64,000 bases of DNA from NCBI GenBank assembly GCA_028826165.1, contig JAPDFW010000088.1, forward strand, positions 124,001 through 188,000. Reading direction: 5' to 3'. Below, piece by piece: positions 553 to 33,947 of this stretch. A model generated the notes under the pieces. That model was not told the origin of the DNA, did no database searches, and saw only the letters and a program-made list of their open reading frames with translations. The stretch's first letter is position 1, and every line of letters starts with the position of its first letter. A program made the position numbers and the translations under genes. The stretch comes from Anaeramoeba ignava BMAN (taxonomy: Eukaryota; Protista; Anaeramoebae).

Positions 553-3500
553 TCAATACATCCACCAGAACCAAATCATCCAAATTTCAAATAATTTGCG
601 CATCGATAACCAGATTGATATTTTCCACGAAAACCCCAAACTAAAGGATGATGTGATTAATTTATTTTTGGACGTGATCGAAGACATCATTTCCAATTTC
701 ATTGAAAACATGTCGGAAAGCATCTGCATGACAACAAAACAGATCATTGCGAAGGATTTCGCAAACGAATCAAACTGGATCAAAATGAAGGAATCCTCCG
801 AAGTCATGGCATCAAGTCTTGCGCGCAATTTGGCAATGGTGCACGGAAAACAAGTGATTGAGCAGGAATTGATGCAAAAATTGCGCTATCTTCTTGAGGA
901 CGTGGTTGCAGACACAAGCTACCTTCAAGGCATAATTGCCGTTATATATGAAAACAACATAGATTTTGTGTTTAATTTTATTATCCAAATCTCTGTGCAG
1001 CAAACCCTCGAGAAATTGAACGAGGAGCTGACAGAAGAATTCCAGATTCGCGAAGAATACCAAAAACAGGGCAAACCATTTGCAAACACAGACAACTCGC
1101 CCTATTCGCGAAATTTGATTGAGGAGCTTTATCCCGAAAACGGGCTGATGAACTTCCATTTTGAAATATACCAGAGTTTCAGAGAAAATCTGGTCAATCC
1201 AAAAGCAGAAAAAATGCAGTATTCCACAAACAGAATCGGCGACGCCATCAACGATTTCCACCAGAAAACCCTCTCTTTCAAGGACTTTTTCCTTGAAACG
1301 CAGAAATGGGTGCAAATCCTCGCGATTCTTCTTGACAAATACAGCCAAAACGATTCCTCGCTCAATCCGAACCAAATCTCAATGGAAATCAAATCCCAGA
1401 TCGCAAATTTGGAGCGTCTAATCCTCAGCTGCACTTCATATGAAAACGCCGCGCTTATTGCCGCGCAATTGGTCTGCAAACAGTTTTTCCAGCAATATCC
1501 CATTTTCGAGACAACATCCAAAAAAACAGAAATTTCAAGACAAAGTTTCGGGTACCAAATATACCTCAATCTCATGGAGCACATCCACATCATATTGCAG
1601 AACATCAAGCTCAATTCCCAGCCCAAAACTCTGCTTGTTGCGGACACAGTGCAAACCGCATTGACAAACCAGCTTTTGGCGCGATTGCAAAAATCACCGC
1701 CATTCGACTTCAAAATGATCTCGATTTTCATGGAAAAGGACTTGATCGACTACTCGATCCTGGATGAACTGTTCGAGACCTTCTTCTCCGACTTGGCCAA
1801 CACCGCAGCGCTCGATTTCTTCTTCCTGATGATGCAAAAATTCCAAACGGAAGGCGAGCAGAAGAAAATCAACGCGTTCCAAAAATCCGTTTTCAAACTC
1901 GAACACAATTTGCAACAGGCGCAAAGCAACGGAAAGCAGAACAAGACTGCCTTTCTTGGTTCAAAGCTGGAAGAGCTTGTGGCATACGCGTTTTCCGTGT
2001 TCCAAAACGTGAGCGACAACGCGCAGCAAGAGGAGCAGCATCCAAACGAGGAAGCTGCGTTGAAAGAGAATTTCGTAGTTAATTTCCGCGATTGGGTCTA
2101 TTTTTTCCAGACAAACCAGAACGATTCCTCGCAGATGAAAAAAACACAGAAAATTGTGATGAAATTCCGTTCAAGATACTTCACAATTTTGACAGATTTT
2201 TGTGTGAATTTGTCTGTTCACAAAAACAACAACAACAACAACGAAGAACAAAATAAAGACAACGATAATAAAAACAACGATGAACAAAATAAAAACAACG
2301 ATAATAAAAACAACGATAATAAAAACAGTATCAAAACCATCATGGATATTTACGCGGATCTTGACAGCCAAATGCTCGTCGATCCTTCAAAGCTCAACCA
2401 CCAGATGATTGATATGTACTCGCAAATCCTGATCCACATCGTCAAAAACTTCGACGATCCGATCAATCCCGACTCAAACATCGTTGTGATGAAAACGATC
2501 CTCGATTCAATCCTGGAGTCAATGGTCACAAGCTACTACCAGAACGCGGGGATGTTCTGTCCCAACGCGTACAAACGAATCCTGACAAACCTGCTCATCC
2601 TGATCCAGGACCAGCACATGCAGCGTTTCGCGTCGTTGATTCTGCGGTCATTTTACGAGATCTTCGACGCGCTCCAACCGATAAACATGCCTTGGTTCAC
2701 GTTCAGCTGGATCTGCTTAATTTCCAGCAGCGAATTTCTTCCATATCTATTGCAGATGAACCAAGGCACCGGGAGCAAAATGCTCGCCGAATTGCTCGCA
2801 AATCTGCTCAAGTTTCTTTATCCCTATCTCAAACTCCTTATCCTCAACAGACCGATCAGACTCCTCTACAAAGCAACCCTCAGAATCTTCCTCGTGCTTC
2901 TCCACGACTTCCCAAATTTCCTATGCAGCAATTACATCGCCTTCTCCCGCCTCATTCCCGACAACTGCATCCACCTTAAGAACCTTGTCTTATCCGCAAA
3001 GCCAACCACATACGAGGTCCCAGACTACTCCCTCCAGAACGGCGCCATCGAGTCCATCCCTGGAATCGCCGAGATTCCTTCCCTCGATTTTAATTTCCTC
3101 GACTTGCTCTCTTCCAACGCAATCAAAAACGACCTCGTCTATTTTTTGGAGCAGGGAAAACCCCAAGAGTTTCTCCTCAAAATATCCCGCAAAATCACTG
3201 ATATCTACAATCTCGGCGAGAAAATATCCGTAGACCCCCTGGCAGCCCAGACAAACTCCCTTTATTTCGATGGCGTGCTTCTCATCGATTCTCTGATCAT
3301 CTCCATATGCTACTTCTTCATGGAGCGCAATCGCGACCAGTTCGTTTTCCAGAACGCGATAAAGCTCTTCACCGCCTTGCTCGCCAAAATGGAAACCCGC
3401 TATCTGATACTCAACTCGATCGCAAACCATCTCCGCGATCCAAATGCGCACACCCGTTTTTTTAGCGACGTTATGATCATCATTTTCTCGAACTCAAGAG

Positions 3501-3697
3501 AACAGAACCTCAAGGAAACTATCACCCGCGTTCTTCTTGAAAGAGCACTCACGCGCGAGCCCCATCCTTGGGGTGTCATGTTTACCTTCCAGAGGCTGAC
3601 CAAAGACCAAATGTGCCAGTTTTGGGATCAATCTTTTATCACAAAAACTATGAAAATCCAGAAATTTTTAGAGAGGATTCGGAAATCCATTAAATAA
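553..3697 (+). CDS. CNOT1: CCR4-NOT complex subunit 1, terminal exon (5' part upstream of window)
   Basis: Not1 C-terminal motifs FTFSWICLISS, LYKATLRIFLVLLHDFPNFL, IANHLRDPNAHTRFFS, ITRVLLERAL..PHPWG. The frame is open from an AG at 551-552 that follows a satellite intron; the exact acceptor is uncertain. Confidence 0.95.
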
Positions 3698-3724
3698 TAA
3701 ATTTTCCAAACTTTTTTTCTTTTA

Positions 3725-4481
3725 TTTTAATTTTAATTTTAATTTTAATTTTAATTTTAATTTTAATTTTGATTTTGATTTTAATATTGATTTTAATTTT
3801 GATTTTATTTTAATTTTAATTTTAAGATTGATTTTAATATTGATTAATTGATTTTAAGATTGATTAATTGATTGATTGATTGATTAATTGACCAATTGAT
3901 TGATTACAATTATTAATTGATTGATTGATTAATTGACAATTTGATTGACAATTGATTTATTGATTATTGATTGATTAAATGACAATTGATTACAATTGAA
4001 TTGATTAATTTACAATTGACAATTAGTATTAATTAATTGATTAATATTTAATTTGATTATTGATTTGACAATTTATTGATTTATTGATTTGACAATTGGA
4101 TTTGATTTGGTGAATTGATTTAATTGATTGATTGTTATTTATTGACACAATTACCAATTATTAATTGATTATTGATTGGACAAATGGACAATTATTATTA
4201 GTAATTATTTGATTTATTATTAATTGACAATTGACAATTAATGACAATTGACAATTGATTATTGATTTGATTAATTATTTGATTATTGAATGATTGATTT
4301 CATTGGTAATTATTGACAATTGACAATGGATTGATTGATTGAATTAATTAATTGGACATTAATTATTGATTGATTGATTGACATTTATTTGGACAATTGA
4401 TTAATTTACAATTAAATTGACAATTTATTTATTATTAATTGATTTATTAATTAATTGATTGATTTATTGATTAATTAATTA

Positions 4482-4512
<31 letters not shown>

Positions 4513-4700
4513 AATTGATTAATTGATTGATTTTAAGATTGATTAATTGATTGATTAATTGATTGATTAATTTATTGATTTATTGATTGATTGATTTATT
4601 GATTTATTGATTAATTGATTGATTAATTAATTAATTGATTGATTGATTGATTAATTAATTGATTGATTAATTGATTGATTGATTAATTGATTAATTGATT
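3725..4700. repeat. Intergenic ATTG/ATTA microsatellite array with a degenerate middle (about 3890-4440)
   Basis: (TTGA)n/(TTAA)n units between the CNOT1 stop and the next gene. Confidence 0.85.
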
Positions 4701-4861
4701 TATAGATTGTTTTCCAATTTCCAAAAAGAGAAAAAGAAAGAAATGAAATCATTTCAAATTCAATTCAAGATCAAGAACTTGAAAAGAAAAAATCAACGGA
4801 TAATTTTTCTTTTTTTTTTCAAATTTTCCAAAAAAAAATCATTTTCTTTTTTCAATTCAAA

Positions 4862-20844: not shown

Positions 20845-22609
20845 ATGCAAGATTTGAAAAGCCAATCACTTGGACCTTACGAAAAAGAAGTAGAAGAAAA
20901 GGTGAAGAAAAGGGGTAACAATTCAAATCAAAAAAGAAATGAAAAAAAGAAAGAAGAAAACGAAGTTATTGATGAACAAATTCTTTCGGCAAATTCTCCA
21001 AAAGAAAACGATCCAAAACCAGGTAAAAAATAATTTATTTTGTTTTCTTTTCTAAAACAACTCATTTTCTTTTTTTTCTTTTTTCTTCTGTTTTTTTTCC
21101 CGTTTTTTTTCTTTTTTTCCTTTTTTAGATGTACAATCCAAAAATCTTTTAAAAAAAAAAGAAGAACAACAAATTTTTTTTTTGATTAAATCAAATTAAA
21201 ATTTTTTCTTTCCTTTTTTTCCCCATTAGATTAATCAACAAGAGAAACAGAAGAAACAGAAGAAAAGAACGAAAAGAAAGAAACAAAAGAAGCAAAAGAA
21301 AAAAAAAAAAAAAAAACAAAAGAAACAAAAGAAACAAAAGAAACAAAAGAAACAAAACAAAAGAACAAAACCGATCAAACACAAGAAAAGAAGGATCAAC
21401 AAAAAACTATCAAACAAAAGAAACAAAAATCTATCAAAGAAAACAAACAAAACAACTCAAGAAAAGAAAAGCGAAAACGAATCAACAAAACCAAAAAAGC
21501 AAAATCAAAAGAAGAGAAGAAAAAAAAAATTTACAAAAACTGAAAGAATGTTGAGAATAGGAATTAAAGAAAAAAAAATTCAAATTAAAAACCAAGGAAT
21601 TGAAAGAAAAGTCGAGGATATTTTTATCAAAACTGTTTTAAATGGAGAAATATTTTGTGAAGTCAAATTTCAAATTGGTGATGTTATAACAATTGAAAAA
21701 AATTTCACAAAATTTTGGAAAGAGAAAAAACCAAATGACAAAAAGCTTCCTGATTCAGTTTTTCATGCGTTCTCCAAGTACTTTAAAAAAAAGCAAGCAA
21801 CCAAATTTTATCCACAAAATCATTTCCAAGAATATCAAATTGAAAATCAAATTGAAAATGAAAATCAAAATCAAAATCAAATTGAAAATCAAAATCAAAA
21901 TCAAATTGAGAATGAAAATGAAATTCAAATTGAAAATGAAAATCAAAATCAAAATCAAAATGAGAATGCAAATCAAATTCAAATTGAAAATCAAATTGAA
22001 AATGCAAATCAAAATCAAAATGAAAATCAAAATCAAAATGAAAATGAATATGAAAATCAAATTGGAAATGAAATTGAAAATGCAAATCAAAATCAATATG
22101 AAGATGAAGATGAAGATGAATATGAAGATGAAGATGAAGATGAATATGAAATTGGATATGGATATGTAAATCAATATGAAGATGAAGATGAAGATGAAGA
22201 TGAAGATGAATATGAATATGAATATGGAAATCAAAATCAAATTGGATATAGATATGTAAATCAATATGAAGATGAAGATGAATATGAATATCAATATGAA
22301 TATCAATATGAATATGGAAATCAATATCAAAATCAAATTGAAAATGAATATGAAAATCAAATTGGAAATGAAATTGAAAATGGAAATCAAAATCAAATTG
22401 GATATGGATATGTAAATCAATATGAAGATGAAGATGAAGATGAAAATCAAATTGAGAATGCAAATCAAAATGGAAATCAATATGGATATGGATATGGAAG
22501 AACACTAATTAATCCTTATTTTTTTCGAGGTATTATCGAAAATCCTGAAAATATAGGTGGTTTATTTCAGGATCATTCTTTAAATGAAAATTCTAGAGTT
22601 ATTTCATAA
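20845..22609 (+). CDS. Hypothetical low-complexity protein (K/E-rich, small globular segment, NQ/EDY repeats), 3' end truncated by a MITE; exon 1 20845-21022, acceptor near 21229-21244
   Basis: ATG at 20845, GT at 21023. An AG at 21241-21242 gives an in-frame join to ORF 21548-22609. The stop lies inside the MITE TIR. Confidence 0.6.
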
Positions 22610-22875
22610 AACCGACCCGAGACAATAAATCCGACCCAGACTTCAAATTAAAAGAAAAAAAATTCACCTCAAAAACAAAAGTAAGGAAAAAAGTTCACCA
22701 ACATGCATAATATCTTGAGCAAAAAGAATATATCTGCCTCTTTGTGGATATTCCTTTTTCTCTTCTTCTCTTTCTTTGGATGAATTTTTTCCTTTTAGCT
22801 CCCTTTTGAAAAATGTCAAAATCAATGGGATGGGTCGGATTTATTGTCTCGGGTCGGTTTTATGAAATAACTCTA
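22594..22875. mobile_element. Non-autonomous DNA transposon (MITE): 43-bp perfect TIRs flanked by a TA target-site duplication
   Basis: 22594-22638 TAGAGTTATTTCATAAAACCGACCCGAGACAATAAATCCGACCCA is the exact reverse complement of 22831-22875. Excision restores the host reading frame. Confidence 0.9.
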
Positions 22876-23324
22876 ATCAAAATTTTAATCAAAATTCTAA
22901 TGAAAATTTTAATCAAAATGGAAATCAAAATTTCAATGAAGATTCACAAAAAAACATTCTTGAAAGAAATAATCCAACTCTCCAAAACTCAAATTCTCCC
23001 ATTTCTTCACCAATTTTAAATGACACTTTCAAAGCTCCATTTGATTTCCTTTATAATTTCCAATAATTCATTAGGATTTGGAATTGATTTGATTTGATTT
23101 TAATTTGATTTGGAATTGGTTTTATTTTTGGTTTTATTTTTCTTTTTTTTTGGGATTATTTTGGTTTTATTAAGTTAATAAAAAAAAAATTAAAAAAAGA
23201 ATTTATGATGATGACGAAGAATGACAATTTATTTGTTTTAATAAAAAAATTTTTTTGCTTTTTTGCTTTTTCATTTTTTTTTTAATTTTTTATTTTCCAT
23301 TCTTCAATTCTTATCTTTAAAAAT

Positions 23325-26300
23325 ATGGAAAAAAAACGTAAAATTCCAAAAGATAGAATAAGATTAATTTTCTTTACATCTTATCATTCAAATTTTGAAA
23401 AAAAAAATGAAGAAACCCAATCAAATCAACAAAATGAGTTTATTTTTGATAAAGAAATTAAACAAAAAGAGGAAGAAGAAACATTTCAAATCAAACAACA
23501 AAAATTTAATCTTCAAACAGTCAATTTAAAAGAAGATTTAAAAGAAGATTTAAAAGAAGATTTAAAAGAAGATTTAAAAGAAGATTTAAAAGAAGATTTA
23601 AAAGAAGATTTAAAAGAAGATTTAAAAGAAGATTTAAAAAAAGATTTAAAAGAAGATTTAAAAGAAGATAAACAAATTAATAAACAAGAAGATAAACAAA
23701 TTAATAAACAAATTAATAAACAAATTGATAAACAAATTGATAAACAAATTGATAAACAAATTGATAAACAAGAAGATAAACAAATTGATAAGCAAATTAA
23801 TAAAAAAGAAGATAAACAAATTGATAAAAAAGAAGATAAACAAGAAGATAAACAAATTGATAAACAAGAAGATAAACAAATTAATAAACAAATTAATAAA
23901 CAAATTAATAAACAAATTAATAAACAAATTAATAAACAAATTAATAAACAAGAAGATAAACAAATTAATAAACAAGAAGATAAACAAATTGATAAACAAA
24001 TTAATAAACAAATTGATAAACAAGAAGATAAACAAATTAATAAACAAATTAATAAACAAGAAGATAAACAAATTAATAAACAAATTAATAAACAAGATAA
24101 ACAAATTAATAAAAAAATTGATAAACAAATTGATAAACAAATTGATAAACAAATTGATAAACAAACAGATAAACAAATTGATAAACAAATTAATAAACAA
24201 ATTGATAAACAAGAAGATAAACAAATTGATAAGCAAATTAATAAAAAAGAAGATAAACAAATTGATAAAAAAGAAGATAAACAAGAAGATAAACAAATTG
24301 ATAAACAAGAAGATAAACAAATTAATAAACAAATTAATAAACAAATTAATAAACAAATTAATAAACAAATTAATAAACAAGAAGATAAACAAATTAATAA
24401 ACAAGAAGATAAACAAATTGATAAACAAATTAATAAACAAATTGATAAACAAGAAGATAAACAAATTAATAAACAAATTAATAAACAAGAAGATAAACAA
24501 ATTAATAAACAAATTAATAAACAAGATAAACAAATTAATAAAAAAATTGATAAACAAATTGATAAACAAATTGATAAACAAATTGATAAACAAACAGATA
24601 AACAAATTGATAAACAAATTAATAAACAAATTGATAAACAAGAAGATAAACAAATTGATAAACAAATTGATAAAAAAGAAGATAAACAAATTAATAAACA
24701 AGAAGATAAACAAATTAATAAACAAATTGATAAACAAATTAATAAAAAAGAAGATAAACAAGAAGATAAACAAGAAGATAAACAAGAAGATAAACAAATT
24801 AATAAACAAATTGATAAACAAATTGATAAAAAAGAAGATAAACAAATTAATAAACAAGAAGATAAACAAATTGATAAACAAATTGATAAACAAATTGATA
24901 AACAAATTGATAAACAAATTGATAAACAAATTGATAAACAAATTGATAAACAAATTGATAAACAAATTGATAAACAAATTAATAAAAAAGAAGATAAACA
25001 AATTAATAAACAAGAAGATAAACAAATTAATAAAAAAGAAGATAAACAAATTGATAAACAAATTGATAAACAAATTAATAAACAAGAAGATAAACAAATT
25101 GATAAACAAATTGATAAACAAATTAATAAACAAATTAATAAACAAGAAGATAAACAAATTGATAAACAAATTAATAAAAAAGAAGATAAACAAATTGATA
25201 AACAAGAAGATAAACAAATTGATAAACAAATTAATAAACAAGTTGATAAACAAATTGATAAACAAATTGATAAACAAGAAGATAAACAAATTAATAAACA
25301 AGAAGATAAACAAATTGATAAACAAATTGATAAACAAGAAGATAAACAAATTAATAAAAAAGAAGATAAACAAATTGATAAACAAATTGATAAACAAATT
25401 AATAAAAAAGAAGATAAACAAATTGATAAACAAATTGATAAACAAATTGATAAACAAATTGATAAACAAATTGATAAACAAATTGATAAACAAATTGATA
25501 AACAAATTGATAAACAAATTGATAAACAAGAAGATAAACAAATTAATAAACAAATTGATAAACAAATTGATAAACAAATTGATAAACAAGAAGATAAACA
25601 AATTAAACAAATTAAACAAATTGATAAACAAGAAGATAAACAAATTAATAAAAAAGAAGATAAACAAATTGATAAACAAATTGATAAACAAATTGATAAA
25701 CAAATTAATAAAAAAGAAGATAAACAAATTGATAAACAAATTGATAAACAAATTAATAAACAAAATGATTTAAAAAACAATTCAAAAAATGATTTAAAAA
25801 ATGATTTAAAAAATGATTCAAAAAATGATTCAAAAAATGATTCAAAAAATGATTTAAAAAATGATTCAAAAATGATTCAAAAATTGATTCAAAAATTGAT
25901 TCAAAAAATGATTCAAAAATTGATTTAAAAAATGATTCAAAAAATGATTCAAAAATTGATTCAAAAAATGATTCAAAAAATGATTTAAAAAATGATTCAA
26001 AAAATGATTCAAAAAATGATACAAAAAATGATTCAAAAATTGATTTAAAAAATGATTTAAAAAATGATTCAAAAAATGATTTAAAAATTGATTCAAAAAA
26101 TGATTCAAAAAATGATTTAAAAAATGATTTAAAAATTGATTTAAAAAATAATTCAAAAAATGATTCAAAAATTGATTCAAAAAATGATTCAAAAAATGAT
26201 TTAAAAATTGATTTAAAAAATGATTCAAAAAATGATTCAAAAAATGATTCAAAAAATGATTCAAAAAATGATTCAAAAAATGATTCAAAAAATAATTCAA

Positions 26301-31007: not shown

Positions 31008-33947
31008 ATGAATCTCAATTCAATGGTAGATGTTCTTGTTCATAATAATGTTATTGAGAGTGATATTGTAGAACAAACTATGCGCAAAGTAGATAGAAAA
31101 ACATTTGTTCCAAATTTAGTTGAACCTTATGAAGGTTTTAAATAAAAAATAAAAAAAAAAAACTCAAAAAAATCAAATTAAAAAAAATCAACATGAAAAT
31201 GAATTGAAAATTTCGGAATATTGCATAATAAAGATGCACCAATACCTTGTGGTTTTAACGCAACAATTTCCGCACCACATATATATGGTATATTTTTAGA
31301 ATTATTGAAAGATCATCTTCAACCTGGAGCAAGTGTACTTGATCTTGGAGGAGGAACTGGATATTCCTCAGCATTATTGTATAATATTTTATGGATAATT
31401 TTGTTTGTAGGAATTTTTTAAGATTGAATTTATGAGTGTTTTTATATTTTTTATATACAAGTGGGTCAATAGTTGGGAAAAAAGGAAAAGTTGTTTCTAT
31501 TGAACATATTCCAGAATTATCGAATTTAGCTCGTTCAAATTTGGAAAAGGAACTTCCTAAGCTTTGGAAGAGTAATGTTTTTGAAATCCTCGAAATGGAT
31601 GGTTTTAATGGTTACCCTAAATTGGCTCCTTATGATGTTATTCTTATAGGTGCTGCTTGTGAAAAAATTCCTAAATCTTTGTTGTTACAATTAAAACCTT
31701 GGGGAAGATTGGTATTTGATTCATATATTTTTATATATTTTTATATTTTATTTTTTATTTAATTTTTTATTTAGTTATCTCCTGTTGGACCACAAGATAA
31801 ATCTCAATGTTTGGCTTTTAATTTAATTAACTTGGATTTATAAAACGATTTATAAAATTATTAATAAAATTAATTTATAAAATTAATTATAAAATTATTA
31901 ATAAAACGATTTATAAAATTATTTATAAAATTAAATATAAAATTAATTATAAAATTAAATATAAAATTAATTATAAAATTATTTATAAAATTATTAATAA
32001 AATTATTTATAAAATTATTAATAAAATTAAATATAAAATTATTTATAAAATTAATTATAAAATTATTTATAAAATTATTTATAAAATTATTTATAAAATT
32101 ATAAAATTAATAAAATTATTTATAAAATTAATTATAAAATTATTTATAAAATTATTTATAAAAAAATAAAAATTTATAAAATTAATTTATAAAAATTATA
32201 TATAAAATGAATTTTATGAATATTTATAAAATTACCAATAAATTGTGGTTTTAAAATTATTTATAAAACCACATATAAAATTTATTTTAAAATTATTGAA
32301 ATTATTTATAAAATTATTTATAAAAATGTATTTGATAAGGAGGAATAAAATATTTAAAATTATTTCAAAATTATTTGTATAATATTTTTATGGATAATTT
32401 TGTTTATAAAATTTTTAATAAAGATTAAAAATTTAAAATGAGTGTTTTTAAATATTTTTATATAATTAATTATAAAAATAGTTATAAAAAAGGAAAAGTT
32501 GTTTTATTGAACATATTCCATTAATTTAAAATTATAAATTATTTTAAAATTCGTTAAAAATTTTTATTTTTATAAAAAAAGGAATTTATAAAATTTGGAA
32601 AATAATTTTTTTTAATAAAAAATAAAATGGTTTTAATGGTTACCCTAAATTTTGGCTCCTAAAATGATGTTATTCTTATAGGTGCTGCTTGTGAAAAATT
32701 TATAAAAATCTTTATTTATTACAATTATAAAATTATTTATAAAAAATTGGTATTTGATTTTATATATTTTTATAAAATTATTTTTAAATATTTATTTTAT
32801 TTTATTTATTTATTTTTTATTTATTATATAAAATTATGTTGGACCACAAGATAAATATAAAATTCAATGTTTAAATTTTTTAAATTTAAAAATTAACTTG
32901 GATTTATAAAAAAATTTTTATAAAATTATTTATAAATTATTTATAAAATTATTTATAAAATTAAATATAAAATTATTTATAAAATTATTAATTATAAAAT
33001 TATTTATAAAATTAAATATAAAATTATTTATAAAATTATTTATAAAATTATTTATAAAAATTAATAAAATTATTTATAAAATTATAAATTAAATATAAAT
33101 TAATTATAAAATTAATTATAAAATTATTTATAAATTATTTATAAAATTATTTATAAAATTAAATATAAAATTAATTATTTTTATAAAATTAAATATAAAA
33201 TTATTTATAAAATTAAATATAAAATATAAAATTATTTATAAAATTAAATATAAAATTAAAATTATTTTATAAAATTATTTATAAAATTAATTATAAAATT
33301 ATTAATAAAATTATTTATAAAATTAATGATAAAATTAAATATAAAATTAATTATAAAATTAATTATAAAATTAATTATAAAATTAATTATAAAATTATTT
33401 TAAAAATTTATAAAAATTTATAAAAATTAAAATTATTTATATTTATAAAAATTAAATATAAAATTATTTATAAAATTATTTATAAAATTATTTATAAAAT
33501 TAAATATAAAATTATTTTAAAATTATTTATAAAATTATTTTTAAAATTATTTATAAAATTATTTATAAAATTATTTATAAAATTATTTATAAAATTATTT
33601 ATAAAATTATTTATAAAATTATTTATAAAATTATTTATAAAATTATTTATAAAATTAAATATAAAATTATTTATAAAATTATTTATAAAATTATTTATAA
33701 AATTATTTATAAAATTATTTATAAAATTATTTATAAAATTATTTATAAAATTTAAATTATAAAATTATTTAAAATTATTTATAAAATTATTTATAAATTA
33801 ATTATTAAATTATTTATAAAATTAATTGAATTAGATTTGACAATTGTTGATAAACTTCCTGATGGAACTGTTAATATAACAAGAGGAACTAAAGTTAAAT
33901 TTACACCATTTACTTCTAAAGAAGAACAATTATCATTAAGATATTAA
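31008..33947 (+). CDS. PCMT1: Protein-L-isoaspartate O-methyltransferase; exons 31008-31134, 31234-31378, 31462-31711, 31775-31808, 33835-33947
   Basis: MRKVDRKTF, PYEDAP..GFNATISAPH, VLDLGGGTGY, SIEHIPEL, DGFNGY..APYDVI.IGAA, QLKPWGRL.SPVG, VKFTPFTSKEEQL. All four introns are GT-AG and in frame. Confidence 0.93.
31835..33830. repeat. 12-mer ATAAAATTATTT array in PCMT intron 4 (contains the degraded PCMT ghost at 32200-32910)
   Basis: Direct reading. Confidence 0.85.

Follow-up and report, generated by a model that had tools for sequence, protein, structure and literature searches.

A recently mobile pogo-like element with the structure of a MITE in the protist Anaeramoeba ignava, probably inserted into an orphan gene

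Within the 64,000-nucleotide stretch of Anaeramoeba ignava BMAN DNA analysed here (hereafter the window; contig JAPDFW010000088.1, positions 124,001 to 188,000) lies what is very probably a 278-bp non-autonomous transposon of the pogo branch with the structure of a MITE, which moved very recently and is present in two copies, one in a satellite and the other probably truncating an orphan gene. The window is eukaryotic and about 80 % A+T, with Not1, RasGEF, MutS, TPR and EF-G-like genes among the neighbours; the published nuclear genome of strain BMAN is 80.65 % A+T, and metatranscriptomes have been made for this strain (10.1101/2023.03.03.530753). An A. ignava protein from NCBI (P0001) aligned with contig C83 of the assembly one exon after another at 94–99 % identity, in agreement with a genome of A. 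ignava or of a strain very close to it. No nuclear transposons of Anaeramoeba were described in the literature searched.

Anatomy, second copy and TA duplication

The element is bounded by an inverted repeat (22594–22638 and 22831–22875) of 45 nt per arm with 100 % complementarity and 192 nt separating the arms, a length that counts the outer TA, the TIR proper being 43 nt. In window coordinates, its parts are:

22594–22595: left TA of the target-site duplication (TA is found at both outer ends in both copies)
22596–22638, plus strand: left TIR, 43 nt, consisting of the tip GAGTT (5 nt) and two 19-bp boxes with CCGACCC cores at 22612 and 22631
22639–22830: non-coding interior, 192 nt, 30 % GC, without Pfam or Rfam match
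22831–22873, minus strand: right TIR, 43 nt, perfect complement of the left TIR
22874–22875: right TA of the target-site duplication (likewise at both outer ends in both copies)

Perfect inverted repeats with TA at their outer ends, and CCGACCC twice in each of them, had already been described in the initial annotation, and both observations hold: the TIR pattern gave no chance match in 100 shuffles of the window, while the motif, which recurs at 19 bp in each arm and has its complement at 22832 and 22851, is counted four times in the window, where base composition predicts 0.05. The element, taken as a single strand, forms a 45-bp stem (z = −13.7 vs shuffles), and its 278 bp, to which the duplicated TA is added, have a GC content of 33.5 %. 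The sole ORF of the interior (53 aa) showed no Pfam match, no Rfam family scored above chance in the interior, and there was no similarity between the interior and the transposase loci of the genome.

In its structure, i.e. a length under about 800 bp, TIRs, a target-site duplication and no coding capacity, the element is a MITE. MITEs are, however, found in tens to thousands of copies per genome, and exactly two copies are present here, far fewer than in typical MITE families, which counts against full MITE status. The initial annotation of a MITE family is therefore retained for structure and not for abundance; strictly, this is a low-copy non-autonomous element.

A search of the 42.8-Mb assembly for TA-flanked relatives, which had been proposed with the initial annotation, returned exactly one other copy (G000:C82:630730–631011), 100 % identical over about 282 bp, and the element is thus not single-copy. 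In both copies the identity begins and stops exactly at the TA-flanked ends, and the flanks of the two copies are 30–58 % identical per 100-bp interval. Genome-wide scans with two end patterns (≤3 mismatches) and with a loose paired-box pattern found no arms beyond these four, and the reversed-pattern controls gave 0.

The second copy sits in a satellite of ~2.7 kb made up of ~225 units of a 12-bp repeat, so that the register of the repeat can be followed across the insertion. When the copy is excised with one TA kept, 80 of 84 period-12 matches are obtained across the junction, vs 74/84 when zero or two TAs are kept; the undisturbed array gives 78–81. Since the satellite register is restored by one-TA excision, the TA target-site duplication and a recent transposition are proven independently of the host gene, and the TA-duplicating insertion postulated in the initial annotation is confirmed. 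A 3-bp duplication was excluded, as this copy has different bases on its left and right just beyond the TA. The accompanying claim of a young element also stands, considering the perfect arms and a second copy that is identical in unrelated flanks: the element has recently been mobile in A. ignava.

Kinship with resident pogo-like transposons

The genome contains 19 places matching DDE_1 (pogo-type), many of them with intact frames, and six matching DDE_3. The DDE_3 (Tc1/IS630-type) loci were rejected as partners of the element, having no end similarity to it and no CCGACCC motif. The mariner Transposase_1 family (PF01359) had no match in the genome, a weak negative given that its control also matched nowhere. 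When the DDE_1 loci were scanned for TA-flanked inverted termini, nearly all had termini in which a TA is followed by a short tip and then by a pair of direct boxes. Two families, here called pogoA and pogoB, were compared with the 278-bp element:

pogoA, L032 724–2319 (1,596 bp; G000:C82, near 159 kb): intact 477-aa ATG ORF at 808–2241, DDE_1
pogoA, L033:1078–2669 (G000:C89, near 114 kb): frame broken
pogoA, L113:3574–5177 (G000:C65): frame broken
pogoB, L108 3228–4815 (G000:C75): 471-aa ORF at 3320–4732
pogoB, L111:3542–5098 (G000:C71): frame broken
pogoA end plan: TA + TAGTT + two 19-bp boxes ending ...AAAAAACCGGGTCA and ...AAAAAACCGAGTCA
pogoB end plan: TA-flanked, boxes ...AAAAAACCGAACCA
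end plan of the 278-bp element: TA + GAGTT + two 19-bp boxes ...ATAAAACCGACCCG and ...ATAAATCCGACCCA; no open frame

The pogoA elements are 1.59–1.60 kb long and TA-flanked, with 36-nt perfect ends that carry the two 19-bp boxes. The transposases of pogoA and pogoB both match Pfam DDE_1 (PF03184) and share 33 % identity with each other (E = 5e-72). Both families resemble the 278-bp element in being TA-flanked and in the build of each end, where a short tip precedes two direct boxes of 19 bp whose CCG cores are spaced 19 bp, but differ from it in their length of about 1.6 kb, in encoding transposases of 471–477 aa and in their box cores, i.e. CCGGGTC/CCGAGTC in pogoA and CCGAACC in pogoB vs CCGACCC.

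When the three kinds of ends were aligned, the boxes fell into register with 22 invariant columns. Ungapped identity was 28/45 between the element and pogoA, 27/43 between the element and pogoB, and 29/43 between pogoA and pogoB, vs a mean of 14 and a maximum of 26 at 32,500 TA sites in the other DNA of the genome, which served as the null. Based on this end homology to pogoA and pogoB above the null, the element was assigned, within the Tc1/mariner superfamily, to the pogo branch; its ends are a third variant in a clade of pogo-like ends, about as distant from those of pogoA and pogoB as these are from each other. Of the IS630-Tc1-mariner affiliation given in the initial annotation, the Tc1/mariner superfamily is upheld by the TA and the ends, whereas IS630/Tc1 proper is replaced by the pogo (DDE_1) branch.

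Identity between the pogoA copies L032 and L033 is about 95 %, in contrast to the 100 % identity of the two copies of the 278-bp element. Considering that the latter are identical and their arms perfect, while the pogoA copies have diverged by ~5 %, the last move of the 278-bp element postdates the divergence of the pogoA copies.

A longer autonomous copy with the same TIR, as envisaged in the initial annotation, was not recovered: no transposase-encoding element with CCGACCC boxes is present in the assembly. The cognate transposase may be missing, unassembled or lost, or a resident enzyme may tolerate a different box core. That the element is active in A. ignava today, being moved in trans by a resident transposase of the pogoA or pogoB type despite the differing cores, seems doubtful to us. 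The two boxes per arm, which are common to the autonomous relatives, would fit a role as putative transposase-binding sub-repeats.

Outside this genome, the two-box pattern gave 45/17 matches in the metagenome/prokaryote collections and no matches in the viral collections. Since the former were all unpaired, lay in DNA of 40–80 % GC and matched at most 7/17 outer TIR bases, they were regarded as chance matches.

Beyond pogoA and pogoB, at least five further DDE_1 families were seen, all of them flanked by TA and most carrying two direct boxes at either end, the box sequences differing, which points to a diversified population of pogo-like elements in this genome:

L102, L103, L109 and L112: further DDE_1 elements of about 2.43 kb
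L106 and L107: further DDE_1 elements of about 2.2 kb
L099, L100 and L101: further DDE_1 elements of 3.2–3.7 kb
L105: further DDE_1 element of 2.28 kb

Among the DDE_3 loci, L013 (G000:C40) and L015 (G000:C146) are 97.7 % identical across the whole 3.2 kb compared and could stem from a segmental duplication or be a longer element, no ends having been found within the flanks covered.

Regarding the surroundings of these elements, the contigs of both copies of the 278-bp element (C82 and C89) each also carry a pogoA copy, which was treated as coincidence. The satellite around the C82 copy (L002:246–2948, about 629.5–632.2 kb) is A+T-rich with short units, and A+T-rich satellites likewise surround the pogoA copies of C82 and C89, the units being 12-bp and 19-bp overall. 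TA-rich satellites may be sinks for TA-targeting elements.

The interrupted open frame and its tail

The copy in the window lies within an open frame, the two parts of which are:

21230–22609, plus strand: interrupted host frame, 459 codons, first ATG at 21548, N/Q/E-rich, with the stop codon (22607–22609) supplied by the element
22875–23066, plus strand: orphan tail, 63 codons plus stop, joined in frame by precise excision

The host frame opens at 21230, directly after an acceptor-like ...cattag, and ends inside the left arm, where the initial annotation had placed its stop, so that the insertion gives the host four residues (RVIS) and a stop in place of the tail. Deleting 22596–22875 fuses the host frame to 22875–23066, with 63 codons open before the stop and the same reading as originally given. 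The GC content of the tail (0.24) resembles that of the host (0.236), the downstream spacer having 0.18. With codon usage trained on Pfam-supported genes in the same window, the proposed frame gives the highest score for the 97 non-repetitive codons of the N-terminus (+0.15/+0.64 bits per codon), and the predicted frame does so for the 40 non-repetitive tail codons (+0.21/+0.83 bits per codon); in the downstream spacer all six frames score below zero.

Frame, GC content and codon usage therefore favour a formerly coding tail, and it is likely that the insertion truncated a translated exon, the reality of the host gene and its native C-terminus being suggested by these sequence statistics. For the coding exon with about 63 restored codons that was initially annotated, the arithmetic, the composition and the codon scores agree, while neither a transcript nor an orthologue nor an empty-site allele came to light.

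The host is an N/Q-rich orphan, apparently absent from deposited proteomes. Its frame matched no Pfam family, exact look-ups of the protein among deposited proteins found nothing, and a word search for relatives with the 353-aa ORF gave one low-complexity match. An exhaustive phmmer search with the N-terminal 97 aa against 1.84 billion representatives yielded two weak matches (E = 5e-5 and 7e-4), and the tail alone as a protein query yielded none. Paralogues with a restored C-terminus, a comparison suggested with the initial annotation, do not exist in the genome, where the host is single copy and the tail and the N-terminus match only themselves. None of the RNA runs examined holds the locus.

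Nor was an empty site found in the assembly, where searches with the unique left flank, with the N-terminal domain and with the unique tail each returned the query itself and nothing more; other matches of the right flank were dismissed as N/Q low-complexity. In run X3, the share of words recovered (0.53) was considered as a sign of an empty site, for which the flanks alone would give 321/601, and rejected, since thin coverage suffices: the share scales with run size (0.38 in run X4 with 29 M letters, 0.53 in run X3 with 40 M letters), and the implied coverage constants of X4 and X3 are 0.017 and 0.019.

Upstream of the host frame, a possible exon at 20846–21229 has an ATG at 20846 and, near 21023, a GT donor, with sites resembling acceptors at 21127 and 21229; no in-frame join of this candidate to the host ORF was found. 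Downstream, an 867-codon frame (window 23325–25928, plus strand) consists nearly entirely of short repeats of the DKQI/NKQI/EDKQ type and is open in three other frames too.

Taking the two insertions together, we infer the following course of events. A DDE transposase of the pogo type, provided in trans, would have bound the two 19-bp boxes of each 43-nt TIR and excised the element, which would then have been pasted into a TA dinucleotide, the TA being duplicated. One copy would have been inserted into the 12-bp satellite, and the other 63 codons short of the end of an orphan N/Q-rich gene, thereby swapping its tail, presumably translated before the insertion, for RVIS and a stop.

It may be asked whether the second of these insertions concerned a gene at all, i.e. 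whether a real transposon landed in non-coding DNA, with the host ORF being no gene or the tail never having been translated and representing a by-product of AAT/CAA-type repeats. Open frames come easily in such DNA: the tail stays open in 3 % of dinucleotide shuffles, at least 63 open codons lie ahead at 15 % of all window positions and frames, the tail has a second open frame, of 68 codons, and four frames are free of stops in the host repeats. The failure to find a Pfam family, paralogue, orthologue, deposited protein or RNA run with the locus is in line with this reading. However, it is precisely the non-repetitive parts of the N-terminus and the tail that score best in the proposed frame, and the GC content of the tail equals that of the host and exceeds that of the spacer. 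Moreover, the match of frames upon one-TA excision is a 1-in-3 event that comes in addition to openness, and similar N/Q/E-rich stretches occur in a named A. ignava protein. On balance, we regard an insertion into non-coding DNA as unlikely.

The remaining alternatives concern the nature of the element itself. Superfamilies besides Tc1/mariner can also produce 2-bp duplications, e.g. the ISL2EU-type within PIF/Harbinger, and, with no cognate transposase found, the assignment made here rests on the TA duplication and on end similarity. Nevertheless, the ends are in register with those of two DDE_1 families and as close to them as these are to each other, the end match lies above all 32,500 null sites, and the second copy rules out a 3-bp duplication, all of which makes another TIR superfamily very improbable. 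An introner-like element that is spliced out as a new intron, leaving the gene untruncated, would explain the position inside an open frame and the preservation of that frame upon precise removal. Yet there is no GT..AG pair at the element borders, and the in-frame pairs available, i.e. host donors 22530, 22557 and 22560 with acceptor 22941, would delete host codons. The 33.5 % GC of the element is also far above the value for introns of the species, which are 91.86 % A+T (10.1101/2023.03.03.530753), and the second copy sits in a satellite, outside any gene; splicing of this kind is accordingly an extremely remote prospect. Two identical copies and no more could, finally, be what is left by an immobile palindrome copied through segmental duplication or gene conversion, or by an assembly artefact. 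Against this, the identity is bounded exactly by the TA-flanked ends, the flanks are unrelated, and excision restores the satellite register. In addition, the short-read contigs of runs X1 and X2, possibly derived from the assembly's own sample, contain 92 % of the words across both junctions. We give immobility or artefact hardly any credence.

Relation to known systems and significance

A recently transposed, pogo-like non-autonomous element thus remains the preferred reading, and it has counterparts elsewhere. Arabidopsis Emigrant, with its pogo-like relative Lemi1, and the human Tigger-derived MER elements are reportedly pogo-derived MITEs. Like these, the element described here is short and non-coding, with a TA duplication, TIRs resembling those of DDE_1 transposons in the same genome and an unrelated interior; unlike them, it has two identical copies, no autonomous partner with matching ends was found for it, and its host is an anaeramoebid.

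Two transposase-binding sites per inverted repeat are known from Tc1-like elements of the IR/DR type, such as Sleeping Beauty and Tc3, which share with the present element two direct sub-repeats per TIR and the TA target duplication. In these elements, the inverted repeats are long, with about 165–200 bp between the sites, and their enzyme is of the Tc1 type (DDE_3), whereas here 43 nt accommodate both boxes and the related enzymes belong to the pogo type (DDE_1). The Stowaway MITEs of plants likewise combine a TA duplication with a small size (about 250 bp) and hairpin potential, and are cross-mobilised by related, non-identical Tc1/mariner transposases. Stowaway families, however, comprise thousands of copies and have mariner-like (Osmar) partners, in contrast to the two copies seen here and the lack of a Transposase_1 match in this genome, a weak difference in view of the control mentioned above.

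The element is newly described, while its kind, i.e. a non-autonomous element of the pogo/Tc1-mariner type, is well known and the event is ordinary, a small transposon probably truncating a fast-evolving orphan gene. Still, it shows that cut-and-paste DNA transposition occurred very recently in the deep-branching anaerobic protist Anaeramoeba, and it defines a small clade of pogo-like elements that share compact ends with two boxes. If the element were indeed active and moved by a resident enzyme, it would constitute a live minimal transposon-plus-transposase pair in a lineage without genetic tools, as well as a natural example of relaxed end recognition among pogo enzymes. The intact 477-aa transposase and its candidate 278-bp substrate would be a reasonable start for a transposon tool in Anaeramoeba ignava.
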